This document shows, in pieces, positions 2,066 to 64,000 of a DNA stretch of 64,000 bases. The stretch's first letter is position 1. Every line of letters starts with the position of its first letter. Below the pieces are notes generated by a model. That model was not told where the DNA came from. It made no database searches and worked only from the letters and a program-made list of their open reading frames with translations. The DNA comes from Caecitellus pseudoparvulus (taxonomy: Eukaryota > Protista > Bigyra: Bicosoecida), in the NCBI GenBank assembly GCA_965644315.1, contig CBFFRQ010000079.1:300175-364174 (forward strand). Direction: 5' to 3'. The position numbers and the translations under genes are program-made.

Positions 2066-2332
2066 ATGGCTTCCAGCGAGCCGTTCATTGTGACTGTGCT
2101 GTTCTTCGCTGCGGCCCGCGACGCGGCAGGCTGCTCCAGCACAGAGTTTCACGCTGAAACGCCGGTCAGCGCCCAAGCCGTGATCGAGGCGCTGGCAAGC
2201 GGAAACGCAGGGCTCAAGGCCTTCGTCTCCTCCCCGTACTTACTTGCAGTGGACGAGGAGTACGTGGAAGGTGACTTCCTCATTTCTGCCGCCTGCGAGT
2301 TGGCCCTGCTCCCGCCGGTGTCAGGTGGCTGA
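2066..2332 (+). CDS. MOCS2A: Molybdopterin synthase sulfur-carrier (small) subunit, MoaD/ThiS-like, 88 aa
   Basis: GCCATGG start at 2066; VTVLFFAAARD..LAVDEEYV..ELALLPPVSGG-stop, with the diagnostic C-terminal Gly-Gly. Confidence 0.92.
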   Translation: MASSEPFIVTVLFFAAARDAAGCSSTEFHAETPVSAQAVIEALASGNAGLKAFVSSPYLLAVDEEYVEGDFLISAACELALLPPVSGG

Positions 2333-2335
2333 GGC

Positions 2336-2935: not shown

Positions 2936-4139
2936 CGCAGGACGCAGTCGTAGCATTGGGGCTTCCCTGCCTTGCACACCTTCCTGCCATCTGCGTGGGG
3001 GAGGGGGCAGTGGGAGGGGGTGTTGCTTGGGGCGCGTGGCGTGTCGCTGTGCGATGCACGCACGGTCGATGAGGAGGATGTGCAGTGGGTACTTGATGCT
3101 GTCAGGCAGCGTTGCGTTCAAGTGGGTGTATGTGGTCTCCCTCGTCACCGGAGGCCACGCCAGGTCCAATGCACCGTCCACCGCCTTCCCTTCATGCTCG
3201 CCTGCGGCATGCTTGGAGGCTGACTGGTCGCAGCCGGTGTCAGGCACACTGGGGCCTGAGGCAGCTGCTGCCGCGCGCCGAGGGCGTTTCGCAGGGGGGA
3301 GACTGGGAGCAGGGTCGGGGCATGGCGGGCCGGCTGGTGTGCCGGTGTGCATGGGGGGCGAGGGGGGGACGGCAGCAGCACCTGGCGAATGCTTGGCCAG
3401 GTCGGCTGTCACTGCGGCGCGAACCGCCGCGTCGCCCGCTGGAGCTGCACGCCGGACGGCGTTGATGAGCGGCACACGGGGCGTCCACCCCAGGCGACCG
3501 GCTATGCGGTGAATGTGCGTGTCCACTGCAAAGTCGGGGCGCTGCAGTTCAAAGAGCAGGACGCAGGAGATGGTTTTGGGCCCCACGCCTTTGAACCGCG
3601 ACAACTCCGCCTTGATGGCAGCAGAGGGGGCCGACCTGAGGTGTTCCAGGGACACCTCCCCCCGTTCTTCCCGAATTGTGTGCAGCATGGCTTGGATGCG
3701 CGCTGTCTTGGAGGCTGCGAGCCCCCCACACCGAATGGCGTCCTGCACCGCTGCAGGCTCGGCGGCTGCGACGGCTTCCCAGGTTGGGAAGGCAGCCTTC
3801 AAGCGGCTGAAGGCCCGGCTGGAATTCACATTCGTCGTGTTTTGTGATAGGATCGTCTTTACCACTGCGTCCAGCACGCTTCGACTTCTGTGCCGGGCGG
3901 TGAGGGCCGATGACGTGGTGGGCTGCGTCGCAACTTCCGCAGCGGCACGGAGCTCACACTGCCGCTGGCTTCTTCTCGCCGTACTCGGCTGACAGCAGGC
4001 GGGTGACTTCAAGGGCTTCGGCTGGGGATGGGCGGGTGTAGTGCTGGAAGGGGGTGGGCTCGTCATACGTGAAGCCAGGAGGGCCGGGCTGCGTCTGGCA
4101 CAAATCCTCCACATCAGGCACTGGCGGCCCAGCTGCCAT
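2890..4139 (-). CDS. HhH-GPD / endonuclease III-family DNA glycosylase with [4Fe-4S] FCL motif; predicted exons 4139-3958, 3887-3064, 2990-2890 (368 aa)
   Basis: VLDAVVKTILSQNTT..SSRAF, HhH GVGPKT and AVDTH are in the long ORF. A GTGAGC..CACAG intron (3957-3888, 70 nt) joins the N-terminal RPSPAEALEVTRLLSAEYG exon. A GTGCGT..CGCAG intron (3063-2991, 73 nt) restores HGRKVCKAGKPQCYDCVLRHLC (C-X6-C-X2-C-X5-C). Spliced length is 1107 nt and in frame. Confidence 0.85.
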
Positions 4140-4320
4140 TGCGTATGGGGTGTGTCGTGCGCAGCAGGTCATGCGGGCTTGGCAAAAGCCACGTGGGGAC
4201 CTTACTCAGATGCGGCGGACTGAAAATTGACGTTCTCCCTCTTGCAGGCTGGACACCGCCTGTTCAAGGCTGCAGTGCCGAGTTTGACGAGAGCGAGCCA
4301 GAGAGTTTGGGCACACAGCC
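4140..4320. promoter_or_regulatory. Probable bidirectional promoter between the glycosylase and SAS10
   Basis: Only 181 bp separate two divergent ATGs (4139 minus, 4321 plus). Inferred from geometry alone. Confidence 0.5.
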
Positions 4321-6578: not shown

Positions 6579-6592
6579 GAAATGCACGCAAC

Positions 6593-21200: not shown

Positions 21201-24200
21201 TTGTCATGGAACGATACGTTAATCGAGTGCCTGCCTCCGCATGGCCTTAAAAAAGTGAATGTCACTGTCTACGTGCATGACCGCCTCACAGCAGGACAAG
21301 CCGAGGGTTTCGGCGAATTCTCCAGCGTCATTGCGAAGAAGGCTTACGAGTATGCCGTGCCCTCCATTTTCCAGCTCGAGTACGCTGGGGCACGCCGGCC
21401 GTATCAAGTGCCATGGCCAACGTACTCTCGGACAGTGGGTGGAGACCTTGTGCGCATTGTTGGATCGTCATTTGGAATCCCCTCACTCGTTGCTCCCCAG
21501 GTGTACCTGGGAAATGCGCTCATCGACTCGAAGGACATTGTGCGTCACACTCACGACGAGCTGCTGGTGCGTACGCCACCTGGAACTGGCGCCAACCTGA
21601 CCCTGCATGTTTCAATTCTCGGGGATGAGTCCAACGGTGTCGTTTTTTCGTATGACCCGCCTGTGATCGCTCTGCTGCAATTCGTCGCTACTGGCGGCCA
21701 GCCATCTCGACTGCACGCCTTGGGCCAGCAGAGGCACAACGGTGAGGACAGCAACTTCACAACTTTGGAAGGCCCGACGGTGCAGCTTGTGAGGTCGAAC
21801 AGCCCAGGAATTGAAGTACTCGGCACCCAGCTGAATCAAGTTGTGCTGGGGTCGTCACAGCGGGTGGAGGACCTCTTTGTGGACGCTCGTGGTGGAGTTG
21901 TGGTGCTGCACGGCTGGAACTTCGGCCTGTTTGAGCCTTCTCCGGAAGACGAAGCAGTTTCCATCGGAGGAGTACTCTGCCAGCGCAGGGTCGGCGCCCG
22001 CACCGTCTGGAGCAGCGACTCTGAGCTGCAGTGCCAGCTCGACGGCATGGTGATCGGCCGCAAGGGCGTCCAGGTCGCTGTCGCAGGCCAAACGACAACC
22101 TTGACAGCGCAGCAGTCCGGCATTCGCGCCATCTGTGACACTGGCTACTTTGCCATGCTGGAAGACACTGACTTTTGCTTGCCCTGCCCAAGGTGCGCCA
22201 CAGATGACTGCCCAGCAGGGGCGGAAGCTCCGACAGAGTGTGGCGGAGGCACGTCGCCGCCCGTGTCGCGGCCAGGGTTCTGGCAGCATGACCTCACCAC
22301 CGCCCTTTCTGACAACTGGGCTCACTTGGACAGCACCCCACTGGAATCCTTCCTCGCTGGCGCTGAAGATTCGGCCAGCTCAATCGTAGGTGAGCTGTCG
22401 TCTGCCTTTTCCCGGCGCCTGGCGAGCCCGAGGTTCAACGCCTCAAGCGCAAACTTCACCTCTGCCTCCCGATTCCTGCTGACGCCTTGTGTGCCAGCAG
22501 AAGCATGTCTTGGCAACAACACGTGCGCTGAAGGCTACACTGGTGTTGCCTGCCAGCTTTGTGACGAGAATAGCAGCCGGCAGCCTGGGGCAACCAGGGC
22601 TTGTGCTCCTTGTGACGCACCATCTGTGCATCCCTTGCTGATTGTTCTCTTCTGCGTGCTAGCTTTGCCTTGCCTGGCGATTGCGTTCAGTTTTCTTCGG
22701 CACGCCCCCTCCCTCATCGGCTTTGGCATGGCAGTCTCTTCTCTGCAGCTGCTCAGTCAAGCAGTCAAGCTGAGCATGCCGTGGGGGTCTGGGGCCCAGA
22801 CTGCCGGATCCATGGGCAGCACGCTCCAGCTGGACATCTCCAGCGTCAACTTACCCTGTGCCCTCTTGAAGTCGGGCTACCGATTGGCCTTCTTTGATTC
22901 ATGGAGGATGTACCAGCTGACCCCTTTCATTTTGATTGGGTTTATGGCTCTGGCCACGGGGCTACCTTGGCTGTTCAGCTTGTTCAAACGCAACTCCACA
23001 ACCAGGAGCTCGGAAGCCTTGCGAAAGTTCCTGGAGTTTTCAGTCAGCATCATCTCATTCATGTACGTCGGCATTGTATCGTCAGCACTGGAGGTGTTCT
23101 CCTGCATTCCACTTGGCGGCAAGCGTGTGCTGAGTGCAGACGTGAGCGTGGACTGCTTTGGGGAGGAGTACGAGCGGCTCACAGCGCTCGCATATGCATC
23201 TTTGTTTGGTTACGGTGTTGGAGTTCCAGTGTTGTTTTTCTTTGTCCTCATCTGGAACCGACAAGCAGTGAAACTGAACCTTGACAAGATCAGCAGCGGG
23301 AAGCCACACACCATTCAAGAGCCGACTGACGAGCAGCTGGGCAGGACCAGCAGCAAGGACAAAACAAGCGGTAAAGACACAACGAAAGGCGCAAAGCATG
23401 CATCTGTCCGCAGTCCAGCGCTTGAAAAGCTACACAAATACGCAGCCTTCATCCACACTCTCGTCGGGAAGCTTTACATGCCGTACACCCGTTCCATGTA
23501 CTTCTGGTCCGTTCTGCACTTTGCACAGCGCATGGCTGTCGCAGCGCTGGCGACTGTGTTCAGGGATCGACCTAGTTTCTCTGCTCTGCTTCTCTGCCTT
23601 GCCTTGTCCTTCTATGCATTCCTGCTGGCCTTGGTGCGGCCACATGGCGAGGTGAACGTAGCGCTGAGCTGGGTCCGGGCGGTGAAGTCCGGGCGCTTCG
23701 GTGAGGAGCCGAAGGTAAAGCTTACGGAGCGGGTGAAGACAGCTTCAGAGAAACTTCAGGAGGATGAGGTGTTTTTGATGGAATGTGAAGCCAGGTACAA
23801 GTTCGATGATTGCAGCTCATCTGAAGGAGAGACGGGTGTGACGCAGCGACGACGACGGAGAAGCACGCACAGAAGGCGGTCTTCAAGGCCAGCGTCAACA
23901 GCAGTCCTCAAGAAGCACCAGCGTAGCATTGCAGATGAACGAGCCATGGCTATTGCCAAAGCACACCAAGCATCTCCCGATCCTGGAGACAGCGAGCCAG
24001 TGAAGCAAGAAGTCAAGGCAATCCCAGGCAGCCAGGTCCGAGAGCTTCCACAACAAGGAGAGCACCAGAAAAATCCTCTTAAGGCAATTTTAAATCAACA
24101 GCAGTGTGAGTCAGGAAGAAAGCCGCATGGGGGACTGGATGGCTTCCAAGCTGAAACGACTCGCAGCAGCCAGGAGCCGGAGGTAGTGAGAGTTTCCTCG

Positions 24201-26699
24201 CGAGCAGGTAGCCGTTCCCATGGCGCAGGCAAGCGTACAGTTAAGAGCAGTGTACGGGGTGTCAGCTTGCTAGATGGGTCGCATACTCCTGGTTTAGACT
24301 CAAAGCGCGGTGCATCCGTTTCACCCACATGCCAGCTTGGGCCAGCCACCACTTCTGTTCTTCATCACGCCGCGGGCCTGAGGCAGCAGTCAGCTGGTGC
24401 CAGGGAAGTAACCGCCGGCGACAACTTGCCCAAAGAGGCGGAAAAAGGATTCAGCGGAATGTCATCGACACTCGCCGTAGTGGGGAAAGCTCTTGGGCTA
24501 GGTGGAGCTGGGGGAGTTTCCGAGGCACCTAGAGCCGGGGCGACAGCGGAGGGAATTTCATCTGTCAAGAACCCATTGCACAGAGGCAGAAAGCTCACGG
24601 CAACGCCTGCGACGTCCCATGGCAGGGACGGTTCTGCTGTGCTGGGTGAGAGCGATAGGCACGAAAGCTCTGCGCCTTGCACTCGAAAGCGCAGATCAAC
24701 AGGAGAACCACTGGCCACACTTGAAGAAGACCTGTCGATCTCCGATTCGCTGTCGGAGTGCTTGCAAACTGGTGCGGAAGGGTCTGAGCCACACTTCACA
24801 AGTAATCCGTTGCGTATGGCTCAAATTGCGACTGGCAGTGTGAAGGCACGGCGGACCTCGGAGGGGAGTGACAACAAGTCGGCTGGACCGTCGAAACGAA
24901 AGCGCCCCTCCGATCCCAGCTTGTCCGGGAGTGCAGCAGCGCATGAAGACGCTGGAGGAAAAGTATCCACGGCAACCAATCCCCTGCATGCAATGCGCAC
25001 CACTCAAGGCCTTCGAAGCACGGATACAGCTCTCGCACTTGTGCACTTCTACAACTCATCGGGCAGCCGAGCGACCACAAGGCGTCGCCATCGAGGCTCA
25101 AGAATGCCACAGGCTGAGCTGGGGGCTTCAGATGGAGCGCAGGGACTCCGCAGGTCCACATTGTCGCTTGCATCGTCTGAGCGAGCCCGAAGCTCAACAC
25201 TGCAAGATGCTGGCGAGCCAGCGCAAGGACGGCAGTTGCAAGCGCTGTCAAGTTCTCGAGCACTTCCCACGGGTGCATCCTCTGATCGGCGACCTGACTC
25301 CGGGCCAGGACCTGAAAGGTCTGCAACACCCAAGACTTCTCAACAGCTCTCAGCACGCGGGTCAGAGCAAGCAAGCACTAGGAGCAGCAGCAGCAGCGAT
25401 TCGGAGCCTGGTGGCTTCTTTGGCTCGGGATCAAGCTCTGACTCGTCGGACGGTTCAGCATCTAGTCAAAGCAACCCCAAGGCTGCGCGTCCTATGTTCA
25501 CAGTTGTTGCGCGGACAGCTCTCATGGCAGCCGCGGTAAGGAAAAGCCCCCAAGAGAGCTTCACACCGTCGGGCACATTTTCCGTCCCCGTAGACTTGGA
25601 CGATTTGGAGCCATCCTCAAGCGCGGGTGTACCTTCAGACAGCGAGGAATCAAGTGAGCCAGTTCCCACCAAGGCTTCAAGCCCACCACCTCCACCGCCA
25701 AGGCCCAAATCACCACCAAGTGCCCCGCCTGGCAGGAAATCGCCGCAGTCAAGGTCGCCATTCCCACCATCTCGGCCTCGGCCATCGCTGCTTAACAAGT
25801 GCGGCTCGGCTCCGATCCCTGCTGCGCAGGCCGTCGCCCCCGTCTCAGCAATCTCAACCTCAAGGCACACCTCATCTGTGTCAAGAACTCCCCAAAAAAC
25901 GACGGGGCCAGGACAGACTTTGCCCGCCTCAGATGCACAGCTCAAGACGAAGGGGGAAAGGCCGCCAGTGCCGCTGAACAGAAACTGGAGCTCAAACACA
26001 AAGAAAAGTAAAATATCAAAGGCTGCGCAGCGGACGGTCCAGAAGGAACTGGAGAGCCGCGATGACTCTTGGCCGACACGCTTTCTCTCCTACTGTGCCG
26101 TTGACCCAGATTTAGCAGTGGATGTCGCTCTCGAACACAAGTTCCACTGGGCTGCCTTCAAGTCATGTGGGCGGCGGCGTAAGTTCAACAGGGATCAAAT
26201 CAAGGAACTGGTCGTTGCAGAAGGTGTGGACAGCCTACCCTGCCTCGAGAAAGCACTGTCCGACGATCTCCCGACCGACGGTGAACCTCCACCTGGGGCA
26301 CTGGCCCGATGGAAGCGCTCAACCATCGGCTGTCTGCGCACAAGTGCCCGTCTCTTTTGCTCGTGGTACATTCGCATGGCGCTCTCGTACAACCAAGTTT
26401 CAGTCCTCATGAACGCCTTCCTGTTCTTCGCGGTGTTCGGTTCGCTGATCACATCCATCTCTGGCACGGACTTGTACGTCGAGTTTGCTGCAGTTGTGCT
26501 GCTCTTTGCGGTGGGGATCGTGCCCTCAGTTGTGGTGGAGCTACTGTTTGCCGTCATGTACACCGTCTGGAGCTCCATTGCCCTGAAAGAGCTCGGCATT
26601 GAAACCACCACAGAGAAAGTGAAGCAGCGAGCCAAGTCCGTCGCAGGAGTCCGGACATTACTTCGCAAGTCAATGGCCCCCAAAAAATCAAGAGTTTGA
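15206..26699 (+). CDS. ~3,800-aa secreted-type membrane protein: cadherin repeats + IPT/TIG repeats + Cys-rich region + ~9 TM helices (nonagonal-cadherin-like)
   Basis: 11.4-kb ORF with a signal peptide (GAVLVLLAFFAVPL), cadherin motifs (LDFE/LDYE, NINEPP, DVNEAP, DAEDP), TIG motifs (GG..V.I.G.NFG) and nine hydrophobic segments. A probable micro-exon 15206-15219 plus a GTAGGG..CTGAC..CACAG intron (15220-15322) supplies the ATG; this start is less certain than the ORF itself. Confidence 0.82.
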
Positions 26700-49700: not shown

Positions 49701-52700
49701 GAGCCTGGTGTCATCCGTTCCCCCTGTGCCGTTGTCAAAGGCAGACATCCTGCGGAGTGCAGAAGGTGGATCTGAAGGTGCAGCAATTGGCCGTCGCCAG
49801 GTGTACTTCAAGCACCCCACGGATGTGGTGGAGTCGCAGCTGGCCGTGCCGGAACCACTCCCGGCTGTCGTGTCTTGCTTGCCGGACGACAAGCCCATGC
49901 CCACCATCTGCGCAGGTACGGCGCTGCTGCACCACGGAGTGACGGTGGCCAAACCCCCCACCGCCCGCCGGGCAGTGAAGCGGGCGGACGGTGTTGGCGC
50001 AGGGAAGACAGCTCGCACAGGGCACGGCATGCGCTCAATGCGTGCATCTACATCTCGGTCAGTGCAGAGCCGACACAGTGTAGCGACTGAGCTTGAGCCC
50101 GTCGAGGTTGTGGAAGGTGCGGCACCTGACCTGGACATGTCGTCGAGCAGCGATGATGAGGAAGGTGGATTTGCGCTGTACGACGATCACGAATCTGTGC
50201 AGCCACAGCAGGTGTCCACTGTCGGGGCGGCAGCTGGGGGAAAGGACTTCAGCCACCTCAGGTACGAAGATGGGGAGGAGGAGGTTGGGGACTATTCCGA
50301 CCTCAAGTACATGCTGGACACAGTGGACGTGGGTGGTGCTGGGGGGCGCTTCGCCGTGGGTGCGCACATGGCTGCCGCCATGACGCGAGGCAAGTGGTAC
50401 TGGGAAGTGACCCTGCATGACCTGCCCCAGGACTGCTCCCTGGGCATCGGTATCGCCAAGTACGAGTTTGTGCAGGCCATGTCTGCGGGCCACGCCGAGG
50501 GCGAAGGGCTCAAGCGCGCGTGGAACAACAATGTGTGGCTTGTGAGCGAGGAAAGCGCCCAGCACGTGTCCATTGCTCCCGACGGCATCCAGCTGTGCAA
50601 AGGCTTCAACGTCTCCTGCTTCAGCAGTGGGTCTCGCATCGGCATCCTGCTGGACATGAACGAGCGCCAGATGTTCATCACTGTGGATGGCTGGACCACC
50701 TCCAAGTGCATGGCCTTTGGCAAAGAGGCATTGCACGAGGCAGACCTGGCAGTCGTGCCCTTCATTCAAGGGCGCACGACCACCACCGAGCAGGCCCTGC
50801 ACGTTCAGTTTAGCTTTGGCGCTGGGGTGTGCCCCACTCCGCTGGCTCACTTTAAGAATGAAGACTCGCACCTGGGCGCTGCGGTGGGAGGTGAGATGTC
50901 TGAGGCGAAAAGCCCTGCCGGGCTGGGGTTCCAGCCCTACGGCAGGCGCCTGCGGCAGGTATTCGGTGCCATCAACACGCGCTTCAATAGGGGCCTGCTG
51001 CTGCTGTACTACGGCAATGCGCGCGTGTCTGAGGACTGCGATGTGCGGTCGGTGCCGTTGAAGGTGTCCGATTCTGGCGGCGTGCTGACATCAGCTCAAC
51101 AAGCTGTTGTGGTCATGCGAGATGCCCTCGTGTCGGGGGGCCGCCACTACTTTGAACTCGAGTACTGCCGCCAGCCTGGCTGCGATGCTTCCTCTCTGCA
51201 GGAATTGTCCATCGGCTGGGCCGATGTCGCCTTCCAGGGCAACAGCGACGAAGCTGGTGTCGGGCACGACGCACACTCGTGGGGCTGGTTGCCCTTTGAA
51301 GCTGGCACCAGACACGGCTTCTTGTACCAGCATGATAGGTTTGGGACCCTTGACCGTGACTTTGAGGATGTGAAAGTTGGCGATGATGGTGCCATGCCAA
51401 GCAAATCCTTGGTGTTTAGCTGTGCTGTCGATGTGGATGCCCGCATCATGATGTGCACGGTCAAGGGTGACTGGTCCAGCCGTGCTTTTGTCGCGTTCCA
51501 GCACTTTGATTTCGTTGAAGGGCTCATGCCTGCCTTCTCCTGCCGAACAAGCACTACGCCCGTCCCACACCGGTTCGTCTTCCGACTGGGTCCGCCTCTG
51601 ACAGCCGCAGAAGACCTCCTCGGGGGCCCGCCTGGCTTCTCGCCCATCGCAGAGGAGGTGGACCTCCCACCCTCATCCGCTGCCATGCAAGAAGCGCTCA
51701 GTGCCCGCCCAGGACGGCCAAGTGCCACAGGTGCAGGGCATGGCGGCGGAGCGGCAGCCTCCGGACGGGACAGCTTCAGCAGCTCTGAGCTGTCCTTGGA
51801 CTTGGCCGGTATGGGTGCCGGTGGCGAAGAGATGCCTGCAGACTGCATGCGCCTTGCACCATCTGCGCCCAATAGTATCGTCACGCTTCCAGCCCCACAT
51901 CGCCGCCTGGGTCTGCAGCTGCTGGGGTCGCAGCTCTTGTGTATCGATGACAACTTGAGTGCGTGGGGTGCTGGTGGCTCGTTCCCCACCGCCGGCATGC
52001 CACAAGGGCGAGTGTGCGGTGGTTTGTGGTACGTGGAGATGCACATGGTGCACGGCAGCCACAATGACGTGCAGGCTGGGTGGGCAGATGAGGAGTTCGT
52101 GGGAGACTGTGCGAATGGATGTGGCACGGGGGACGATGGCCACTCCTGGGGTGCAGATGGAGGCCGCAGCCTCTTGTGGCACAATGGAAGAAAGTCGTGG
52201 GGCGTGCGATGGAACGATGGCGACACGCTGTGTTGCTTGCTTGACGCCACCAACCGCAAGATGTGGTTTGCTGTGAACGGCGAGTACACTGACAAGTCCC
52301 TGGCGTTCCAAGGTGACGAGATGGACTTCTCAGGGTCGCTGTACCCCGTGTTTACTGCATCATCCTACTCCGATGCGCTCATGCACATGCGTGTACGCCA
52401 GGAGGACTTTGCATTCGCCCCAGACTTTGGCGCAGGCAAGCATATACCTGTGGAGGAAGTGGAGGCGCCTGAGCGCCTGCGGGCCCTGTCGGAAGCCATC
52501 GACTTCAACACAGCCATGTTCGATATTCACGGCATTGCAACATCAAGGGCTGACGATGAGCACTGTGGTGGCAGCATCGTGCCACACCTCATCGTGCCAC
52601 ACCCGACGTCGTCAGTGGCCACTCTTGAAGGCATCACTGCCGCCGCTTTTATCCGGAACTCGTCTTCGGATGAAGGTCACGCCTGCTTGCGCCTCGTTAC

Positions 52701-55029
52701 AGGCGACTCCCGAGGTTCTGTGCGCGTGTGGCAGGTGAATGCCGGCTTGCAGTACATCCAAGAGCTTGGCCACGGCGTGCAGACGGAAGGCGAAGCAGTC
52801 AAGTCTCTGTGCCGTGCTGAGCGGGAGACGTACGAGGCGCGGTCAGTGGCTCTGGTGGGCATTGACAAGGTCGGTGTCTGCGTGTGGGGCATCTCCAACG
52901 ACCGTGTGGAGGGCGACTTCGCCCCTGTGGAAGTGCACGATTCGGAAGCAGATGTTGCAGGCTCAGGCGATAGCATCTTGCCGGGTTTCTTGCGAGAGAT
53001 GGACGTGCCGCCTGGACAGGGGTACGAGCCCATTCCCATCAGGCTGGAGAAGCTGGACATTCCGTTGACGGGGGAGGACGGCAAGTGCTTCATGGATGCT
53101 CGAACGCTCGTCCAAAGCACGAAGCGGTATTCCACTGGGGAGGAGCCAGCCCTTTTCGTGCAGACTGCGTCGAAGTCCATTGTGCCTTGGCGACTGACCC
53201 ACCTGGATGCCGAGCCGCTGGGCGCCACTACGAAGTGGCTGAAGTCGGCCAAGCACATCACCGCCAAGCTGCTGCCAGGGCGCCTGAGCAACTTCACAGC
53301 GCACTGGCCCCTCAAGGATCCAGACACCGGCGACTACGACACGAAGTACTTGCTCACTGCTGGGCGGGAGATCTACGTCTTACACTGCGGCAACGGGTAT
53401 GGGCTGTTGGAAGACGGGGACGAGGCGACCCTGGAGAAGGAGCGACAGGCACGCCTGCTGCTGCACGGCCTCATTCCCGATGACGGCATCCCCGTCGGCA
53501 TCGTGTCGTACTTCTTTGCCTTCCCTTCTGCATTTTTCGGGGCCACGCGAGAGGTGCGGAACAGACTGGAGCCAGACACAGACGCGTCCCGCGAGTTTGC
53601 CTCAGCGCCAGTGACGGGGCTGCAGTTGAAGTACAAGAGCCAACTGCCCCTCATTGACCATGTCCCTGCCAACCAGAAGGCTTGGGGGGCTCTGTCGTGG
53701 TTTGCGACGGTGACGAGCACTGGTGGCATCTACTTCAGCAATGTCACGGAGCAAGCGCGTGCTCTGAACCACTTTGCCGCCGAGGTCATCGAGCTGTCTA
53801 CAGGGGAGCGCATCACGCAGGTCTCGTCCATCGCGAACCCCCCGGCGGTGAAGTGGGAGGCCACTGGCGAAGACGGCAAGGTGCAGCGGCAGGTGTGGCT
53901 GGACTACGTGGCTGCTGCCACAGAGAAGCAGGCGTCCATGAGCGAGGAGGAGGAGACCGTCGTGGTGGATGCGCCGCACCCCAGCATGCCCCCTCCCAAC
54001 GACGTCATCCTGGTGGGCACGTCACATGGGCGTCTGCTGGCTGTAATCGGCGCGCCGCGCTCTGCTCATGTCACAGAGTCCTTGTGGATGGACTGGCGGG
54101 TGGTGGCTGAGATGGCACCCCAACACGAGGGCAGCATCACGCAGATCGTGCCCATGAGCAAGGACTTCCGACACAAGGTGGAACCGTGGATCAGCTCCTC
54201 CATGCCGACACTGCGGGTGGACAGGCTGTCCGCTGCCATTGACTTCCTCTTCATCACCACTGGCGCCGATCGCAAGATCAAGCTGATGACTCTGGACATG
54301 GACAACAACTTCATCTGCTTGTCTGAAGCAAGCCACGCGGAGGATCCCTCCACGCAGGTGTCCAAGGTGGACTTGAGCCGAGTGGGCGCCGGGCATCGGC
54401 CCTCGGCGGTGGAGGCCCATGCGGAGCATTCTGCGACGCTGACGGGCTCAGGTGCGAGTGGCCTGCACGAGTCATCATCGTCTGTACCGCAGGACGGCGC
54501 TGTCGAGTCCAAGGCGCCGCCTCCTTTGCCCACTCCTGCGTCGGGTCGGGCAGACAGCCCAGGCGGATTTGAAGCAGAAGAGAAGCAGAAACCTGGCAGT
54601 GGGCAAGCCAAACCAGCCCAGGGCGGCTCTCCCGGCCGCCTTTCCTCCAGTGGCAACCCTGGTGAGGATGATGAGGATCTGGATGAACACAAGGAGGACG
54701 CCATGCTGAAGATGAGCACCATGCGCCTGCTGACAGGGCAGAGCAAGAAGAAGGGCTTCGGCTCACCGGACTCCAAGGGACATCCTCAACGTGGCTCGAC
54801 CATGTCGCCCAAGGGCGGCGACCAGGTGGCAGAGGCGGAGGACTACTTTGACTTTGCAGTCATGGACGACAGCGATGACGCGCTGCGGTATGCGGGCAGC
54901 GAGAGCCGCAAGGTGCTGCAGAGCAAGTACGCACCCGAGTTCAACGCTGGCGGGCCAACGCGCCCCCTGCCCATGGTTTCTGGCAGGCGGAAGTACCAGA
55001 TCCTCGGCATCGATGGGCTGTTCATTAGG
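28774..55029 (+). CDS. Giant (~8,700 aa) multi-TM protein with long helical/coiled-coil regions, five SPRY domains and a beta-propeller-like C-terminal region; 3'-truncated by telomeric repeats
   Basis: Uninterrupted ORF of >26 kb with strong GC3 bias; first ATG at 28774. SPRY signatures are GKHYFEV (~48270), GKWYYEV (~49135), GKWYWEV (~50390), GRHYFEL (~51140) and GLWYVEM (~52021). There is no stop before the TTAGGG array; the formal ORF ends at 55989. Confidence 0.85.
29083..29151 (+). other. Probable 69-nt in-frame, stop-free intron in the giant gene
   Basis: GTGCGG donor, CTTAC branch-like motif, C-rich tract and CCGCAG acceptor. Removal deletes VRRRRVRITTLHTSHLPPNPPPQ and rejoins a hydrophobic helix (LCFLALLLTISM+VIPSLYSLY). 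Confidence 0.75.
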
Positions 55030-55898
55030 TTAGGGTTAGGGTTAGGGTTAGGGTTAGGGTTAGGGTTAGGGTTAGGGTTAGGGTTAGGGTTAGGGTTAGG
55101 GTTAGGGTTAGGGTTAGGGTTAGGGTTAGGGTTAGGGTTAGGGTTAGGGTTAGGGTTAGGGTTAGGGTTAGGGTTAGGGTTAGGGTTAGGGTTAGGGTTA
55201 GGGTTAGGGTTAGGGTTAGGGTTAGGGTTAGGGTTAGGGTTAGGGTTAGGGTTAGGGTTAGGGTTAGGGTTAGGGTTAGGGTTAGGGTTAGGGTTAGGGT
55301 TAGGGTTAGGGTTAGGGTTAGGGTTAGGGTTAGGGTTAGGGTTAGGGTTAGGGTTAGGGTTAGGGTTAGGGTTAGGGTTAGGGTTAGGGTTAGGGTTAGG
55401 GTTAGGGTTAGGGTTAGGGTTAGGGTTAGGGTTAGGGTTAGGGTTAGGGTTAGGGTTAGGGTTAGGGTTAGGGTTAGGGTTAGGGTTAGGGTTAGGGTTA
55501 GGGTTAGGGTTAGGGTTAGGGTTAGGGTTAGGGTTAGGGTTAGGGTTAGGGTTAGGGTTAGGGTTAGGGTTAGGGTTAGGGTTAGGGTTAGGGTTAGGGT
55601 TAGGGTTAGGGTTAGGGTTAGGGTTAGGGTTAGGGTTAGGGTTAGGGTTAGGGTTAGGGTTAGGGTTAGGGTTAGGGTTAGGGTTAGGGTTAGGGTTAGG
55701 GTTAGGGTTAGGGTTAGGGTTAGGGTTAGGGTTAGGGTTAGGGTTAGGGTTAGGGTTAGGGTTAGGGTTAGGGTTAGGGTTAGGGTTAGGGTTAGGGTTA
55801 GGGTTAGGGTTAGGGTTAGGGTTAGGGTTAGGGTTAGGGTTAGGGTTAGGGTTAGGGTTAGGGTTAGGGTTAGGGTTAGGGTTAGGGTTAGGGTTAGG
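55025..55898 (+). repeat. Proximal telomeric array: TTAGG + (TTAGGG)144 + TTAGG
   Basis: Perfect repeats span 55030-55893 (864 bp), flanked by partial TTAGG units. The G-rich strand is on +, i.e. pointing toward the right end. Confidence 0.98.
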
Positions 55899-56719
55899 CA
55901 ACTCACAATGCATTTCACCTCGGCACAGCTTGGCACCGTACAGCTTGAGCGTCACACGGGCGCCCCACAATGCACCTCTGCACATGTAGGACGCCACAGC
56001 GGCTACCGCTTGGCGCGGATTCGCAACAAACACAGGCTTGCACCCGTTATATCTGCCGCCACTTGCTAGGGCAGGTCCCTGCCCGCTCCAATTCATCATC
56101 TTGGCCCTCCTCCGCTACACTTCATCCCTTGCTCGCCAGCGCCAGACACCTGGGGCACACCAGAGCACACCCAGGCATCCGCGCAGTCTTGACAACAGAT
56201 CATAATCCAAATTCCTCACCCACCTCCTCTGTGGCCCTCATAGGCCTCTCTGCGCCCTTCATGAGGTGTGTGCTCCGCCTCTGCGCGGGAACTCCGGCCG
56301 GGTGCGTGGTGCGGAATTCGATCGCGCACACCAGCACCCGTGCGCACACACGCGCCCGCGCCACAGAGCGCATCGCGCGCATCAAGGGGGATACAGAAAG
56401 GAAAAGGACCTTCTTCTTCAGCCCGTCACGCCCTGGTTTCGTGGTGAGTGAGCTTGCTTCATCGTCAGCCGCCATCCGGGCCGCGGCCGTGCAGCACTGC
56501 GGCTGCACACGCGCCGCGGCCCGAGGCACGCTCCCGCTCACTCCACTGCTACTCGCAGGCTGTGTAGTAAGTAAAAGGTAAGGTCTTGGGCATCTGCTTG
56601 GGCTACCGTGGCTATCACCACGCTTCCACACAGGTTCATCACGTCAGGACACTCGTGGAGGGTAGACGCGGCCACAAGCGTGGCTGTTCCACTCCCCGCC
56701 CGCACGCCTGCGTTCCGCC

Positions 56720-59700
56720 TTACTCCTCGCTCTCTTCACAGGAACCATCGGGCCCTTCCCCCTCACCATCAGTGTCTGCATGGGCTGGCTGAGGCCCCAT
56801 GAAGTGCTGCAGCGTCCTCTGGACCTTGCCCTCCGTGGACGGCACTCGGCCAGCCTTGGCAGGGAAAAGGTGCGTGCCCTGCGGCGAGTGCGGGGCCTGC
56901 GCTGTGCCGCGTGGCCGCTGACCGCACTGGCTGCGTGCGGCCAGCAGCGGCGCCCCGCGCCCATGTACTGCCCACCACAGGTACTCAGCATGCCTCTGGA
57001 CAGCAAGGTGGTGGGCATCGGTCATACGCAGCATGTAAGTGACTGTGACCCGCCACGCCTTTGCTGTGAACTCAACCGCGCTGCGCAGGATGTCTTGCCA
57101 TACAGCTGGGGCACGGACACGGCAAGGACCAGCACGGTGGACGAGAGGTGGGGGTGGGAGAGGACAGCCGCCTCTTTCATAGAGACAAGCTGCTCTTCGT
57201 CGGCCAGCCCCCACCGGTGAGGCCACTGCCCGCAGAGCAGGAGCCTGTGGAGGTCCTCGAGGTCCCGCACGCTTCGCCGCGCTGGGTCGGGGGCACGAAG
57301 GACGGCGTGGCAGATCTTGGGGATGGGCAGGCACTGCACTTGGCCCGCCGCGGGACTCGGGCACAGCTGACCTGTTGGCCAGTTCTCTGAACTTGGTCAT
57401 CGTGTGTTGGCGTGCCATGGTGAGTTCGTGGTGGGTGCAGTGCAGCAGGATGTGCACGTGCAGCTGTACATCGGTGTTGAGTCCGCAAATCGGACAGCAC
57501 TCGTACAGAGTGGCACTGTCCCCCCATGAAGAAGCTGTAAGGTCTGGAAGTGATGGACCATCACCTGGTGGGCCTGTCATCAGGACAGACCCAGAAGAGG
57601 GGGTTCACCCTGTGTGGCAGTGGATGTAGCCACACGAAGTGCTGCGCACCAGGCCCAAGATGATAGGGCCTGGGCTTCTGCACTTGGGGGATTCGGCTGT
57701 CGGTGGTGTAGTGGGCAGCTGCACTCGGCACTGCCTGGGCTACATGAAGATACGACGCGAGGACTTGGCGACGCAGGGCCCAGGGGGTGTCTGCCGTGAA
57801 GGCCGGGGGTTCGGCCATGGACGACGTCTCGCTGGCAGCCACCCCAACCACCGCAGACCTGTGGAGGCCCGGGGTGGTCTTAAGTCCGGCAAGGACTTGG
57901 GCAAGGGCTGTGCAGCATGCTCAGAGCCAGGTGCACATGCAAGCCGAAGCTGTGCAAGGTCTGGCATGCAGCCCATGAGCCAGAGGTCCAAGAGGGCATG
58001 CAGTGCCCACGGAGCAGGGACACTGGCAGCCCGGAGTCGACCTCCATCAGCAATGGTGTCGACGATGAAGGTCGTCGACATCGAAGCAGGCATAAGGTCA
58101 AGGGCCTGCGGGATGGTCAGGCACAGAGCTCGGGCAAGAGGTGTCCGAGTGCAGCATCCGGAGAGCCTCTGACAAACATCCCAGTCCGCAGTTGCGTGGA
58201 GCGGATGTGGGCAGGCAGGACTCCGCATAGAGCCAGCTTGGCGTAGCTGTGGGGGCGCATGAGTGCACTCTGCGAGCCGACTTGGGTCCTGTCCAAGGCG
58301 AGGGCGACGCCGCGGTCAACATCGCGCAGCGGAAGCAGGGAACTGTTGGCTTGGGTGGACAGCATGTAGTCGGCGGCTGACGTGACAGTGGCATACCCAA
58401 CCAGGTGCCGCTGCTGCACATCGAGCCAGGTGGCACTGAGCAGCGCGCCCGCAGTGAACTCCGGCTTGGATGCAAGCAAGCCCAGCTTGTTGCAGGGTAA
58501 GTGCACGGGTCTTGGCAGGATGTTCGGACATCGGCACACCCAAGTAGTGTACTCGGCCACCCGTTGGATGGACTTGGTGCCAACCTTCAGCATGCTGCCC
58601 GCTTGAGGGCAGCCGAGCGCCACACCAACTTCTTCCTTTCACTCGACTGGTGTCCGGCTGCCTCGCACGGAGTTGGCAAGGATCATGACCCCGGACTTCG
58701 ACGGGTTGATGGCAAGGCCAACCTGGGCAGCGATGGCCTTCACCTCTACGAAGATTCGGTGCAAGGCCGTGGCAGACGTTGCGATGCAGGCCAGGTCGTC
58801 TGCATACAGGGTGTGGGTGACATGGCCTGCTGGTGTTGGGATGCCCACTCCCTGGATGCCTTGGAGGGGCATCTCGGGAGTCCTTGCGACAGCACATCTA
58901 TCGCAACCTTGAAGAGGAGGGGGACAGAGCTCCTCCTTGGGGGACACCATTGCTGACAGGAAGGGGGCGACAAAGACCATGCGCGTGTTGATGGAGACCG
59001 TCGCCTTGGACATGCACTCCTTGATGACGGCCAGGAGTGGCGCAGGAGGGAGGCAGCCTCAAGGATCTCTGTGATGGCTGCGTGGCTCACAGAGTCGAAT
59101 GCTCCCCGGAAGTCCACGAAGAGTACCAGGACTTGCACTGGCGCTGTTGACTGTCGCAGTGGCCCTTGATCACCTCTTGGAGAGCCAAGATGTGCTCATG
59201 CGTGTTGCGGTGTCGAGTGAAGCCAGCCTGCTCCTTCGACACCCATGTTTGCATCCAGGACTCCAGGCATGCAGCGGCCACTGAGAAGAAGAGCTTCGCA
59301 GGAGCGGGGGGCGGCATACAATCACGGGGTATGCGAGGCCGCCCAGCTTCACTCGTCTTCTTGGGGATGAGTGACCCAATGCCTGCATGGTAGTCTGGCG
59401 GCAGGTGCCGTGTTGCAACGCTTGGATGACGGATTGGGAGTAGATGTCTTGGAAGCCTGGCCCAGCATACTTGATGTGCTCTGATTGGAACTTGCCAGAG
59501 CCTGGGTGTCGATGCAAGCTGAGGATCCCATGAGGACTTTGACTTGCTTCTTGGAGGGAAGCCATGTCACTGGCGGGGTGAAGGACTCTTGGGCTGAGGG
59601 AAGGAACCTTGCCAGCCCGGTACTTCAGCGATGTTGGCCTGGGCTTGTTGTGACTCAGGATGCCAGACATCTGCTTGGCAACCTCCTCTTCACCAGATCA

Positions 59701-61930
59701 GGAGGAGATGAGCACTCCCTGCATGGACTTCACGGACCTGATGGGAGCTCGACGGGCTCGACGACCTCGACCTGACAGGCGCTTGATGCGAGGTGGGCAG
59801 TGAAGGGATCCGTGACAGCGAGTTCCCTCAAGCGTGCTCGGATCCTGGACAGAGTGACATGTCGCTTCTTCTTCACAAGCCTCGTGCACTTCCGCATTGC
59901 ATCCTTGCGGCATTGAAGCGTGGCGTGTAGCTCTTCAGTGGCCATGGAGATTCCCTCTCGGATGGCACGGGCGTGGTCTGCTGAGGATGCCGACCGGTGG
60001 CAAGTGCGAGCTCGGTGCAGCTTGGCAATGGTCTTCCGCAGCTTGGACACGCGTGCAGTCATGGACTTCTTGAGCCCGCTGGCCGCCTTGATGTCCATCT
60101 TCAGCTGGGGCAGAGGGTCACGGGGGTCTTGGCCTTGCGATGTGTGTCCATAGCCGCAGCTTCGATAGCACCGTTGAGAAAGGATAGGGCTCGTGGCGGC
60201 GCTGCCTGTCTGGAGCGCGGTGGCCCGCGAGCTGAGGGATCCTCGAAACATCGCTTGCGCTGCCAGCCCAGCCTCTGTCGCTGAGGTCCACCAGGGTGGC
60301 ACCGCCTGTACATGGGGGCTCTTGGATGATGTCCACACTCGCTTGGCAGGCTTCACTCGGACTTCTGCTGCAACAAGATGATGGTCACTGAGGACTAGTC
60401 GAGCGGCACTCTTTTTCGTCCCGCTGGAGAACGTTGTTGTGATGTGCAGTGGTCTGCTCAACATACTGTGGAGGTCCTCAGCTCATCAGGATGTGGTCCA
60501 GAGCCCGACCATACCTGTGGTGGCAGGCCACCAAGTCCGGCTGGGATCAGTGGGCCTTGCTCGCAGAGGAGCTGCATCTGCAGGATGTCTTCAGTGGGCT
60601 CGGGAATGCCGGTCCGGTTCTCCCAGTGATCTGCTCCCCACGTGCCTACCCCTTCGTCACCTGGATGAGTGTTCAAGTCACCCATGATGACAATCATGTG
60701 GGTGAGGCGGAGCTGTTGAACAGCAGACTCAAGCTGCCGCCAAACCTCTTGCCGGTACGGAAGCTTCGTGTCCGGATCAGCGACTGGCTTCTTTCGCTGC
60801 CAAGAGTGCCAGTTGGGTACGTACGTGGCTATGATGGCGATGGGTTGTGGGCTTGCAGGGATCGAGCAAGCAATTATGCAGCGACCATCAACGTCGAGGC
60901 CCGGGATCACTGAGCCATTGAGTCTTCGATCAAGCAGCAAGGCAACCTCACTCCGCCCGACAGGCCGATCAGGCGGGCTTGGGCGGAAGCATTCAAGGCC
61001 CATGACTTCCGTGTCGAGCAGGCCGTGCCCCCCAGGCTCTGTGACACAGAGTGCCAACATGGACGACGCACTGCACACAGACTGGACACAGGTGACGACA
61101 TCGTGGACACACTGGCCGCAGGAGCCGTGCACATTCCAAGCAGCAAGTGCGAGTGTCATGTGTCTTCCGCGGCCGACAGGGGTATGGGGTGCATCGCTAC
61201 TGATCTGGTCGGCGACTTGTACAGATGTTGGGATGAGTGACAGTATGGGGTCAACCGTCTTGGCTCTCTCATCGGCAGCTGCTTGTTGGCGCGTGGTGCG
61301 GCCTACAGGGAGGTACACCCGTGTTGTCTTGCCAGTGATGAGAGTCTTTGGGTAGACAGTCTCGTCCTCAGCTACGAACGGGAGTGGGGGAAAGTCAGAC
61401 CTGAGGGACAGCATGGCCAGCCGCACTCTGTCTTTGAAGGGAATCGGCTTGCCACTCAGCGGGGAGGATGAGACACGGTACACAGACTCAATGCCCATCG
61501 AGTCGAGTGTGTTCAGGCAGCCGTCGATTGGAATGTTGGTGCTCTTGAAGGGTTCGTCAGGGTTCCACAGTACAAGTGTGGACTTCTCAGCGTTGACGAC
61601 AATGAGCTGAAGGTGGGAGACACCTCCAGTGTCAACCAAGCTGAGAGCAAACGCGAAGTACACCCCAGCAAAGACTTTTGCCTCGGAGGTCATCTCTTTC
61701 TCTGCCTTGACATCAACCAGGCAGTGTCCAGACACTGTGCCGCCTTCAAGTTCCCGATGGCCCTCGTTGATACGCGTGAGCAAGAGATGAAGACCAGGGA
61801 GGAGCACAGGTGGACAGGCACTGGTGAGTGCTGCATCATCAGGCGCATGTCGGTACAGGAACGATTGAAAGATGGTCAAGCTTGTCTTGCTCGGTGGTCG
61901 GCATGGAAGGTTCTGTTTCACAGACAGCAT
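56720..61930 (-). pseudogene. Retrotransposon ORF2/pol (APE endonuclease - RT - CCHC), broken by many frameshifts in this sequence
   Basis: APE: WNVHG (~61130), LCVTEP, TYVPN, GDLN (60671-60682), SDH (60381-60389). RT: EQAGF (~59225), VDFRGAFDSVSH (~59082-59117), GVPQGGALSP/LLF (~58915-58950), LYADDL (YADD 58795-58806), GLAINPSKS, YLGV (~58540). Knuckle: CPICGLNTDVQLHVHILLHC (~57437-57496). The motifs are spread over all three frames. Confidence 0.88.
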
Positions 61931-63266
61931 GGACCTCCGAGTCTGGTGTGCCAGGGTGACGCGCGCTGCTCTTCTTCAACACAGCACAGAAGGATGTCTG
62001 CGCCGCTTGGATGGTGGCTGCGTGTTGAAGAAGGACAAGGTCATCGTCATTGAAGAGTGGCTCTCCTGCTGCTGTTTCAAAGCAGGCCTGGACACAGTGT
62101 CGTTGGTCCTTATTGCGGAACGCGTGCGCAGAGGCGAGGAGTTGCTGCAAGGGGGAACCCAAGTCAAGGTTTGCCTGTCCAAGCCGTGCTGGTCGGCGAC
62201 TGCAGTCAGCAAGTTTTAGCAGCGTAGTGGGTGCCGTGTTTGCAGGACTTGCAAGAGGTGGCTGTGCCCCGCTGCCCGATAGTGCCGCAGCTGTCGGGGA
62301 CACGGGAGGAGGTCTCTTGCGTGGGCTGGGCGAGTCCCATCTGCTGAAGGTCGGGCGCTTGACTCTGGTGGACGGAAGAGGGACATGTTCAGGGGAAGGA
62401 GCAGCTTGGCCTGACGACTCGGCGGGTGCAGATGGAGGGGAGGGCGCTGTGGGGCGAGTAGTCACGACGCCCTCCTTGAACAGTTCAGCAAAGCGCCGAG
62501 GAGGAGAGCTCTTTGTCGATGGCTTGCGTTTGCCCCTCCGTGTCTTCTTCTTCTTGGGACCGCCTTCAGCAAGGGGCTTTGGCAGTGTGCTTGGCAGCTT
62601 GTCGACAGAGGCGTCATCTTCTGGAGAGACGGAGTGTCCGACAGGCTTTGGAGCACGCTTGGCGATGGAGTGAGTGTTGGTGACATGGGCATGGACAAGC
62701 TTCAAGATCTTGGACACATCCCCACTCTCACAGGCAATGTTGGTTGCTGCCTCAGAGATCTTTTGAGCAACCTTCACTACAGAGGGAGGGGCGATCACGC
62801 TGACCCTGGCGCGCTCTGACGTGAACTGCCGCGTGTTGGAGTACACCACGCCCACAGAGCCGCCCCCCTTCAACATGATGATGAAGTCTTCTCGCACAGC
62901 AGCAGCAACGCGCAGGGACTTGGCAATGGCGGGGCCTTCACCGTCACTCGGCAGCGTGACAAGGAGAATGGTCTGCCCTGGTGCGGATTGTTTCAGCGCG
63001 GAATTAGCGCGCACCATCACAGGAGCAGCTCCAGGAAACTCGGCCTCCAGCTCATCTCCGAAGATGCCAAGCCACTTGCGGACGAAAAATGATGCATCTT
63101 GGCCATCCGTGCAGTCAATGTCCATGCCACCGAGCTGGAAAGTCCGGGCTGCCCCTCGGCGTGACATGTCAGTCAGCACGCCTGTTCGTGGCCGCCCTGA
63201 CACACGCTGCTCCAGGCACTTGTCCGCGAAGAGCACGCCGAGGACTTGGCTGGCCTTGGATGACAT
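61839..63266 (-). CDS. Retrotransposon ORF1 (or N-terminal part of a single polyprotein), ~475 aa
   Basis: First ATG at 63266. Globular-looking N-terminal ~200 aa, a basic NLS-like PKKKKTRRGKRK and a Pro/Ser-rich linker. Overlaps the next frame at 61839-61930. No gag CCHC knuckle was seen. Confidence 0.65.
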   Translation of the reverse strand: MSSKASQVLGVLFADKCLEQRVSGRPRTGVLTDMSRRGAARTFQLGGMDIDCTDGQDASFFVRKWLGIFGDELEAEFPGAAPVMVRANSALKQSAPGQTILLVTLPSDGEGPAIAKSLRVAAAVREDFIIMLKGGGSVGVVYSNTRQFTSERARVSVIAPPSVVKVAQKISEAATNIACESGDVSKILKLVHAHVTNTHSIAKRAPKPVGHSVSPEDDASVDKLPSTLPKPLAEGGPKKKKTRRGKRKPSTKSSPPRRFAELFKEGVVTTRPTAPSPPSAPAESSGQAAPSPEHVPLPSTRVKRPTFSRWDSPSPRKRPPPVSPTAAALSGSGAQPPLASPANTAPTTLLKLADCSRRPARLGQANLDLGSPLQQLLASAHAFRNKDQRHCVQACFETAAGEPLFNDDDLVLLQHAATIQAAQTSFCAVLKKSSARHPGTPDSEVHAVCETEPSMPTTEQDKLDHLSIVPVPTCA

Positions 63267-63486
63267 GATGATGAAGCAATGGTTTCGGGCAAGCAGTGGT
63301 GCAGCGTCCAGCCGGAGCCGCACTTAGCACTGCGTGGGGAGCGTGGCGTGCGGAAATCGCACTGCTGCTCACCCGCGCACCCAATGCAATGCACTAGCGC
63401 TGTGCAACACCACACTTGGGTGCACGAGCGCCTGGATTAGGCATTGTTAGCAATGCACAACCTATGATTAGGTTGACATTTGGAAA

Positions 63487-64000
63487 GTTAGGGTTAGGGT
63501 TAGGGTTAGGGTTAGGGTTAGGGTTAGGGTTAGGGTTAGGGTTAGGGTTAGGGTTAGGGTTAGGGTTAGGGTTAGGGTTAGGGTTAGGGTTAGGGTTAGG
63601 GTTAGGGTTAGGGTTAGGGTTAGGGTTAGGGTTAGGGTTAGGGTTAGGGTTAGGGTTAGGGTTAGGGTTAGGGTTAGGGTTAGGGTTAGGGTTAGGGTTA
63701 GGGTTAGGGTTAGGGTTAGGGTTAGGGTTAGGGTTAGGGTTAGGGTTAGGGTTAGGGTTAGGGTTAGGGTTAGGGTTAGGGTTAGGGTTAGGGTTAGGGT
63801 TAGGGTTAGGGTTAGGGTTAGGGTTAGGGTTAGGGTTAGGGTTAGGGTTAGGGTTAGGGTTAGGGTTAGGGTTAGGGTTAGGGTTAGGGTTAGGGTTAGG
63901 GTTAGGGTTAGGGTTAGGGTTAGGGTTAGGGTTAGGGTTAGGGTTAGGGTTAGGGTTAGGGTTAGGGTTAGGGTTAGGGTTAGGGTTAGGGTTAGGGTTA
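63487..64000 (+). repeat. Distal telomeric array G(TTAGGG)85TTA, running to the window end (probable chromosome terminus)
   Basis: Perfect TTAGGG repeats from 63488 to the last base, in the same orientation as the proximal array. Confidence 0.98.

Follow-up and report, generated by a model that had tools for sequence, protein, structure and literature searches.

The 64,000-nucleotide stretch of DNA analysed here (the window; G000:C79:300175-364174) belongs to the genome assembly of the bicosoecid Caecitellus pseudoparvulus, and its right edge coincides with the end of the contig. Two perfect hexamer arrays were detected in the window with Tandem Repeats Finder: a proximal, internal TTAGGG array at 55028-55898 (plus strand; 145 units, 100% match, 871 bp) and a terminal TTAGGG array at 63487-64000 (plus strand; 86 units, 100% match) that extends up to the contig end. 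As both arrays read TTAGGG on the plus strand, the G strand runs 5' to 3' towards the end, and this polarity is the one expected for a right-hand chromosome end. The 7,588 bp between the arrays (55899-63486) represent a single minus-strand element, a long interspersed nuclear element (LINE), with its 5' end at 63486 (distal, towards the terminus), its 3' end at 55899 (proximal, facing inward) and a coding signal that is confined to the minus strand throughout. The last 9 kb of the contig accordingly consist of a broken gene, telomere repeats, the LINE and telomere repeats again, and the hexamer register of the array on one side of the window copy is exactly maintained in the array on the other side. 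Terminal direct or inverted repeats, as present in long terminal repeat (LTR) elements or as terminal inverted repeats, were not found in 55899-63486, nor was any match to Rfam. The repeat analysis and the minus-strand coding thus bore out the preliminary description of a full-length, 7.6-kb non-LTR element that is enclosed by two perfect, co-oriented TTAGGG arrays and has its 3' end facing inward. The feature is almost certainly a real telomere-specific LINE, and chance is excluded as an explanation, since the genome contains 20 copies with the same ends and the same context.

These copies were obtained by a DNA search of the 30.6-Mb assembly, which comprises 215 contigs, and they are 91-100% identical, 14 being full-length and six partial. 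All 20 are contig-terminal, at distances from a few hundred bases to about 22 kb from the contig end, and all share a single orientation; TTAGGG repeats are located distally of 13 of the 14 full-length copies. The partial copies all retain the 3' end and reach as far as element positions 7111, 6427, 6020, 5323, 2246 and 453, the one stopping at 5323 being cut by the contig edge and the others being 5'-truncated. Head-to-tail stacks are present on the contigs C197, C32 and C154. This distribution demonstrates the telomere-specific family that had been proposed from the window alone, and the mapping of all genomic copies along with their flanks revealed no random non-telomeric placement among the 20. 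Identical, uninterrupted copies are present on C196 and C154, and four further copies differ from these two by 3-5 single-base indels and by no substitution; six copies without a single substitution point to recent activity, and the family is young. A search with the reverse transcriptase (RT) protein yielded 113 matches, which fall into subfamilies at 96-100%, 67%, 61-64% and 39-41% identity, and at least four other subfamilies possess long open frames. Among the 113 matches, those on the plus strand are all located within 21.2 kb of a contig start, and those beyond 25 kb are all on the minus strand.

The coding region of the element spans 56720-63323 on the minus strand and forms a single frame of 2,207 codons in the uninterrupted copies of C196 and C154, with the domain order N-terminal module, apurinic/apyrimidinic endonuclease (APE), RT and CCHC motif. 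In the window copy this frame is broken by about 39 small indels, and the protein work was performed with a naturally open copy as reference; neither a consensus nor a repaired frame was made. The RT with its YADD motif (58546-59368, minus strand) is distributed over several frames in the window copy, and the corresponding region of the open copy matched the Pfam family RVT_1 with an E-value of 2.9e-29; the best matches in the PDB were the RT of R2Bm (2e-16) and human L1 ORF2p (1e-11). The exonuclease III-type APE (60354-61153, minus strand) reached 24.7 bits with the Pfam family Exo_endo_phos on the open copy, the cut-off being 24.5, and four relatives that are 32-56% identical all keep the catalytic positions WN, E, Y, D-N-H, D and SDH unchanged. 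The sequence of the APE is very divergent: the comparison with the PDB returned a single weak match, to E. coli exonuclease III (E-value 0.014), and no match to a retrotransposon endonuclease. A structural model of the domain (pTM 0.77) was nevertheless comparable to Mth0212, APE1 and ExoIII in Foldseek, with an E-value of 4e-12 and a TM score of 0.6. The C-terminal CX2CX12HX4C (CCHC) motif at 57416-57523 (minus strand) is kept in the relatives P0001, P0015 and P0016, which are described below; the general form CX2CX12-15HX4-6C lies C-terminal of the RT in all relatives compared, and Pfam detected nothing else in this part of the protein. The APE, the YADD-containing RT and the CCHC motif expected from the first reading of the DNA were therefore recovered by Pfam analysis and motif reading. 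The element accordingly combines a LINE-type RT, an N-terminal APE with its catalytic residues, the lack of terminal repeats and the occurrence of 5'-truncated copies with one 3' end.

The N-terminal module of about 700 amino acids (61163-63266, minus strand) is about 40% identical to the open reading frame (ORF) of neighbouring elements that lack an RT. It was assigned to no Pfam family at E-values up to 1, so that a Ulp1/C48-like identity is not supported. A zinc knuckle is likewise absent, as a direct reading of the N-terminal 700 residues revealed no CX2C and zf-CCHC was not among the Pfam results, and the AlphaFold prediction of the module provided no reliable model (mean pLDDT 34). In the window copy, the module is apparently split off by a 1-nt insertion. 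Regarding the initial prediction of a full-length element with an ORF1, the full length stood, whereas a separate ORF1 gene did not, the copies on C196 and C154 containing one frame only; the window copy itself is not open.

Compared with the uninterrupted copies, the window copy shows 28 substitutions and 39 small indels. The indels comprise 1 nt in 31 of 39 cases and adjoin the same base in 21, and the substitutions often lie beside indels. All these differences are confined to element positions 1613-7373 (window 56114-61874), the distal 1.6 kb being identical. On account of this pattern and of the ratio of indels to substitutions, the frameshifts of the window copy look like the product of an unpolished long-read consensus rather than of decay. 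A comparison with the 91%-identical C32 subfamily resulted in a ratio of non-synonymous to synonymous substitution rates (Ka/Ks) of 0.12 overall, 0.15 for the N-terminal module, 0.075 for the RT and 0.07 for the APE, the constraint on the APE thus equalling that on the RT. As judged from these ratios, the ORF is shown to be under selection for coding function.

The 3' untranslated region of the element (55899-56719, minus strand) contains no poly(A) at its 3' end and instead carries a terminal module, ending with ..GTGAGTTG followed by CTAAC. This module includes a hairpin region at 55910-55950 (stem-loop at 55921-55938), a palindromic AATGCATT box at 55906-55915 that is shared by the families, a tail between the box and the 3' end at 55899-55906 and a telomere-unit tag at 55893-55898, all of them on the minus strand; the tag is CTAAC in other copies and includes one extra base in the window copy. 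In 16 of the 20 copies, the 3' end reads ..AATGCATTGTGA(G/A)TTG and then CTAAC, which corresponds to GTTAG|CAA(C/T)TCAC on the G strand. The resulting junction GTTAG|CAACTCAC is present in these 16 copies irrespective of the proximal sequence; the remaining four, including the window copy, are about one base off GTTAG. The same plan, in which a 6-bp hairpin is followed by a GAGG stretch, the AATGCATT box, another 5-8 nt and finally CTAAC, is common to five sequence families among the loaded loci, including the RT-less neighbours and a metagenome scaffold (L035), and the box reads CAATGCATTG in the RT-less partner elements. In an alignment of six sequences only, 98.5% of the hairpin cells are paired, as opposed to 18-48% in slid controls, four of the six stem pairs display compensatory changes on both sides, and the covariation score was reached by none of 500 shuffles. 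The tail module is a candidate recognition or dimerisation signal for the RT. At the opposite end, the element begins with a conserved 5'-terminal 26-mer (TTTCCAAATGTCAACC...; 63461-63486, minus strand) that starts with TTTCCAAATG, is always preceded by a telomere unit and may function as an initiator or promoter element. The 26-mer beginning TTTCCAAATGTCAA is common to the LINE, to the neighbouring partners (92%, last 91 nt) and to the sister subfamily of L035.

The sequences to which the 20 copies are joined proximally vary considerably. Eight copies follow at least 3.5 repeat units, three follow about two repeat units and nine follow 4-9 nt that are preceded by the body or the 5' end of another element. 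Accordingly, 12 of the 20 copies have fewer than three repeat units on their proximal side, the tract measuring 9 nt or less in nine of these, and the LINE was also found to be joined to truncated elements via GTTAG only. Since GTTAG also occurs at junctions without a preceding repeat, this motif seems to be templated by the CUAAC tail of the element itself and not to be a remnant of the target. SART1Bm, the studied endonuclease-targeted telomeric LINE, requires at least three repeats (PMC7265360), and a comparable confinement of insertions to runs of telomeric repeats was not observed, with 12 of the 20 copies falling below three units. The designation of the element as telomere-repeat-targeted in the preliminary description is consequently correct with respect to the telomeric location and probably too narrow with respect to repeat targeting, as no more than 9 nt of repeat adjoin nine of the copies and the LINE has relatives attached to non-telomeric broken DNA.

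These joins to broken DNA involve a family of SPRY-domain genes. The 9,153-codon mechanical ORF that runs into the internal array of the window is a real giant, intronless SPRY-domain gene (28528-55027, plus strand), which is cut off at 55027 and contains no stop codon. The last 2.6 kb of this gene (52438-55027) are subtelomeric and multi-copy, with 20 further matches of 89-95% identity on 19 other contigs. Recurring left boundaries of this segment were noted at about 52438-52447 and about 53944-53960. At the junction ..CTGTTCAT|TAGGGTTAGGG (55027-55028, plus strand), the window switches to TAGGGTTAGGG, and a comparison with five paralogues revealed that the homology continues past this point in all five of them. 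Beyond the break, the frame remains open for at least 498 more codons in three of the five paralogues and contains an early stop in one, and the paralogue on C111 is broken further on by an element. Since the five paralogues continue past the switch point, the SPRY copy of the window is broken and telomerase-capped, which indicates that the putative break-and-heal junction at 55027-55028 represents a chromosome break capped by telomerase.

Two further paralogues were found to end at elements. On C111 (L033, about position 42100), the SPRY paralogue stops at a different codon, and nothing but GTTAG separates it from the 3' end of a partner element; the order on this contig is the paralogue, a 330-nt partner fragment, 36 repeats, a full-length LINE of the present family and the terminal array. 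On C32 (L018, G000:C32:21985), a third paralogue is followed by (G)TTAG, the 3' end of a different partner (266 nt), GTTAG and a copy of the LINE. Both partners are RT-less relatives that possess the same tail module as the LINE. The SPRY family hence displays three different break points, one of them capped by telomerase in the window and two capped directly by elements, and the latter joins are the expected signatures of cDNA that would have been primed on a non-telomeric broken end. A neighbouring putative partner (L014) contains an ORF matching residues 434-722 of the LINE with 42% identity; this ORF ends about 600 nt before the 3' end of the partner, so that no room is left for an APE or RT.

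The genome check for telomerase identified one locus on C77 (TERT, L034; G000:C77:24238-27642, minus strand), which combines Telomerase_RBD (2e-20) with RVT_1 in one frame, for which a length of 1,389 codons was reported, and whose nearest relatives in the databases are metagenomic proteins with 39% identity. The presence of this gene, the perfection of the arrays and the de novo repeats on the broken gene support the earlier suggestion that the element acts alongside telomerase.

Building on the anatomy of the element, the distribution of its copies, the junctions, the selection on the ORF and the TERT gene as described above, we infer a priming step, a recognition of the RNA tail and an order of events. 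The main route of insertion is probably priming on chromosome 3' ends, be they natural, eroded or broken, similar to HeT-A and TART. The element RNA would end with the hairpin, the AATGCATT box and one C-strand telomere unit (CUAAC), without poly(A), and its tail would probably be recognised by the polyprotein of the element, consisting of the N-terminal module, APE, RT and CCHC motif. The RNA would then be copied onto the G-strand 3'-OH at the chromosome end: the orientation of the element implies continuity between the G strand and the cDNA, and the G-strand 3'-OH would thus prime reverse transcription at the CUAAC tail of the RNA, and a cDNA copied in this way would grow outward and leave the 3' end of the element proximal and its 5' end distal. 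Incomplete copying would give rise to the 5'-truncated copies, and the new end would be extended either by telomerase or by the next element, resulting in arrays of 0 to about 900 bp between head-to-tail elements. Template jumping between RNAs possibly accompanies the priming on ends, and the APE may prepare or nick the chromosome end. For the window, the presumed order of events comprises the break of the SPRY paralogue at 55027, capping by telomerase (871 bp), addition of the LINE and synthesis of the terminal array by telomerase.

Priming on chromosome ends is favoured over strict cutting of repeats because the repeat tracts may be short or missing and because joins exist both to truncated elements and to broken genes. 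Several points nevertheless weigh against this preference, and some of them are in line with a mechanism in the manner of TRAS and SART, according to which the APE cuts the TTAGGG duplex on the G strand at TTAG^GG, all copies were inserted within existing arrays, and short tracts or direct joins represent later deletions or rare endonuclease-independent events. The APE is intact, its predicted fold is that of ExoIII and APE1, its catalytic residues are invariant among relatives of 32-56% identity and the selection on it is as strong as that on the RT, although a pure addition to ends needs neither. The window copy and at least four others are embedded between two long arrays, with at least 3.5 repeats proximally together with repeats distally in eight of the 20 copies; the repeat phase is constant at both junctions, which would follow equally well from cleavage at TTAG^GG combined with a short duplication of the target, and the two arrays of the window are in register. 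Moreover, in both cases of a direct join to a broken gene the attached element belongs to a partner family and is not the LINE itself, and the short tracts between elements could have shrunk after insertion. An endonuclease-dependent route stays in contention on account of the strong constraint on the APE and of those copies, including that of the window, which have a long array on either side. A strict TRAS/SART-like insertion is nonetheless rather unlikely in view of the 12 copies on fewer than three units and the nine on 9 nt or less, the two different break points at which relatives with the same tail adjoin non-telomeric coding DNA, and the GTTAG that occurs without a preceding repeat and would hence be templated by the element. 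The paradox of a selected endonuclease is also not peculiar to this element, as TART retains one despite its addition at chromosome ends (PMC5537684).

Alternatively, exchange between chromosome ends, by recombination or break-induced replication, might account for most of the spread of the copies, with the element as a passenger of subtelomeric duplication. Several copies are indeed identical, the adjacent SPRY segment is itself duplicated on about 20 contigs, and the copies on C196 and C154 have similar proximal neighbours; however, the proximal flanks and the 5' truncation points vary between copies while the 3' end is constant, the Ka/Ks of 0.12 between subfamilies reflects selection for coding function, and at least four other subfamilies have retained long open frames, so that such a passenger role appears very unlikely. 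An assembly artefact, in which the succession of gene, array, element and array would be a mis-join of telomeric reads, could be suspected from the noisy consensus of the window copy, but it is hardly credible given that the array-element-array layout is present on at least five other contigs (C154, C111, C177, C133 and C196), recurs for a sister subfamily in the independent metagenome scaffold L035 and shows the correct polarity at every end.

A comparison with known telomeric elements disclosed similarities to several groups. With HeT-A, TART and TAHRE of Drosophila, the element shares the terminal head-to-tail stacks with the 3' end proximal, the direct capping of broken non-telomeric ends (here by partner 3' ends on C111 and C32) and, as regards TART, a selected endonuclease despite terminal addition (PMC5537684). 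The Drosophila elements, whose RT is of the Jockey clade, also include an abundant RT-less relative with the N-terminal (Gag-like) module, for which the neighbouring L014 would be a candidate counterpart. In contrast to the Drosophila elements, the present LINE resides in a host with TERT and with long perfect TTAGGG arrays that are interleaved with the elements, its tail is one telomere unit instead of oligo(A), and it contains one fused ORF instead of gag and pol; no close sequence relationship to these elements was detectable. TRAS1 and SART1, members of the R1 clade from Bombyx and Tribolium, are likewise LINEs with APE, RT and CCHC motif that occur only in telomeric repeats of a telomerase-bearing host and with a fixed junction phase. 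They differ by two ORFs, a zinc-knuckle ORF1, poly(A) and insertion in both orientations, whereas the element described here has one ORF, lacks both knuckles and poly(A), lies in one orientation only and is in many cases joined to 0-1 repeat. The fungal elements MoTeR1, MoTeR2 and FoTeRs also occupy the TTAGGG telomeres of telomerase-positive hosts, lack poly(A), leave short tracts between stacked copies and include an autonomous element along with a non-autonomous partner that has common termini, but they encode a C-terminal restriction-like endonuclease (REL) of the CRE/SLACS type (PMC12857005) in place of an N-terminal APE. The Penelope-like elements Athena and Coprina resemble the LINE in their telomere-complementary 3' end, which is able to pair with the G overhang, and in their 5'-truncated, terminal copies; their RT is of the Penelope type and without an endonuclease, in contrast to the LINE-type RT and the selected APE found here. 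Only SART/TRAS, GilM/GilT, Zepp1, MoTeR1, Tx1-1_ACar and Athena were listed in a 2023 compilation of telomeric retroelements, in which Tx1-1_ACar (anole), Zepp (Chlorella) and GilM/GilT (Giardia) represent further telomere-associated non-LTR elements (PMC10088271).

The database searches yielded few relatives of the element. Only seven of 1.84 billion representatives scored below 1e-30, and the next matches were generic LINE RTs with 25-33% identity; none of the listed telomeric retroelements stems from such a host (PMC10088271), which is consistent with the earlier statement that the element is not a named family. One of the relatives, P0001, is encoded on the 7.7-kb ENA metagenome scaffold L035, which carries repeats on both sides and is 97% identical to sister-subfamily copies of the present genome. 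This high identity makes L035 an independent assembly and not an independent host, so that its interpretation as an independent species was rejected, and the scaffold confirms the layout in an independent assembly. Two other relatives, P0015 from a coral metagenome and P0016 from the Logan run SRR24000141 (contig L037), are each about 29% identical according to BLASTP (34% and 32%, respectively, in HMMER) and have no DNA match to this genome. Contig L037 opens (1-30) with three CCCTAA units, which have the matching orientation and lie 7.6 kb from the ORF; this is only suggestive of a telomere context, and no clear telomere context was found for L036 and L037, which derive from other organisms. 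On L037, the CCCTAA units are followed by CCGGCAAGGA, the same 10-mer that follows the telomere unit at some 5' ends of the element in this genome; the frame of L037 (7579-18753) comprises 3,724 codons, with about 2,100 residues preceding the APE. The JGI metagenomes contained no more relatives detectable by protein patterns or by a DNA pattern of tail box plus repeat. The nearest named RT matches are hypothetical proteins from an arachnid, Artemia, Haematococcus and fish as well as one "LINE-1 ORF2" from Chlorella; the Atlas search returned generic clusters with APE and RT only, and the PDB comparison of the nearest RT matches does not discriminate clades. The published literature searched contained no description of such an element for such a host. 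To judge by the notes searched, the evidence from paralogues that three breaks arose independently (two being element-capped), the Ka/Ks figures, the covariation of the tail hairpin and the reading of the frameshifts as consensus noise are new.

Other genes of the window provided information on the host. The best named homologues of the ribosome-biogenesis protein Tsr1 encoded at 37-1965 (plus strand) are 36-40% identical and belong to mosses, Aphanomyces, a brown alga and animals, a mixture that does not confirm the stramenopile-like host proposed from the window alone, and closer matches, one with 99% and two with 63% identity, were obtained from ENA metagenomes only; judging from these protein comparisons, the host is a poorly sampled lineage. 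An intronless ORF of 3,791 codons at 15324-26699 (plus strand) encodes IPT/TIG and cadherin-like domains, and the G+C content around it is 0.57-0.59, compared with 0.61-0.70 in the rest of the non-telomeric window.

Telomere-specific retrotransposons occur in insects, Giardia, Chlorella, a few fungi, rotifers and one lizard. The element Tx1-1_ACar of the lizard is reportedly also located in TTAGGG repeats, Zepp is said to possess poly(A) and to be self-nesting, and GilM/GilT were reportedly described as elements without an APE. To our knowledge, Drosophila is the only well-studied case in which such elements build and heal chromosome ends, and telomerase has been lost there. We tentatively suggest that the LINE group and its RT-less partners might heal chromosome ends by retrotransposition, as a second system that operates alongside telomerase in a deep-branching marine protist; this system would cap eroded or broken ends directly by means of the telomere-unit RNA tail and would represent a convergent mutualism of the HeT-A/TART type with telomerase still present. 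The genome appears to show both systems, as telomerase repeats alternate with LINE or partner cDNA at the same ends. An RNA tail that equals a telomere unit would provide a simple mechanism for a LINE to find chromosome ends, and the setting is a culturable, telomerase-positive protist.

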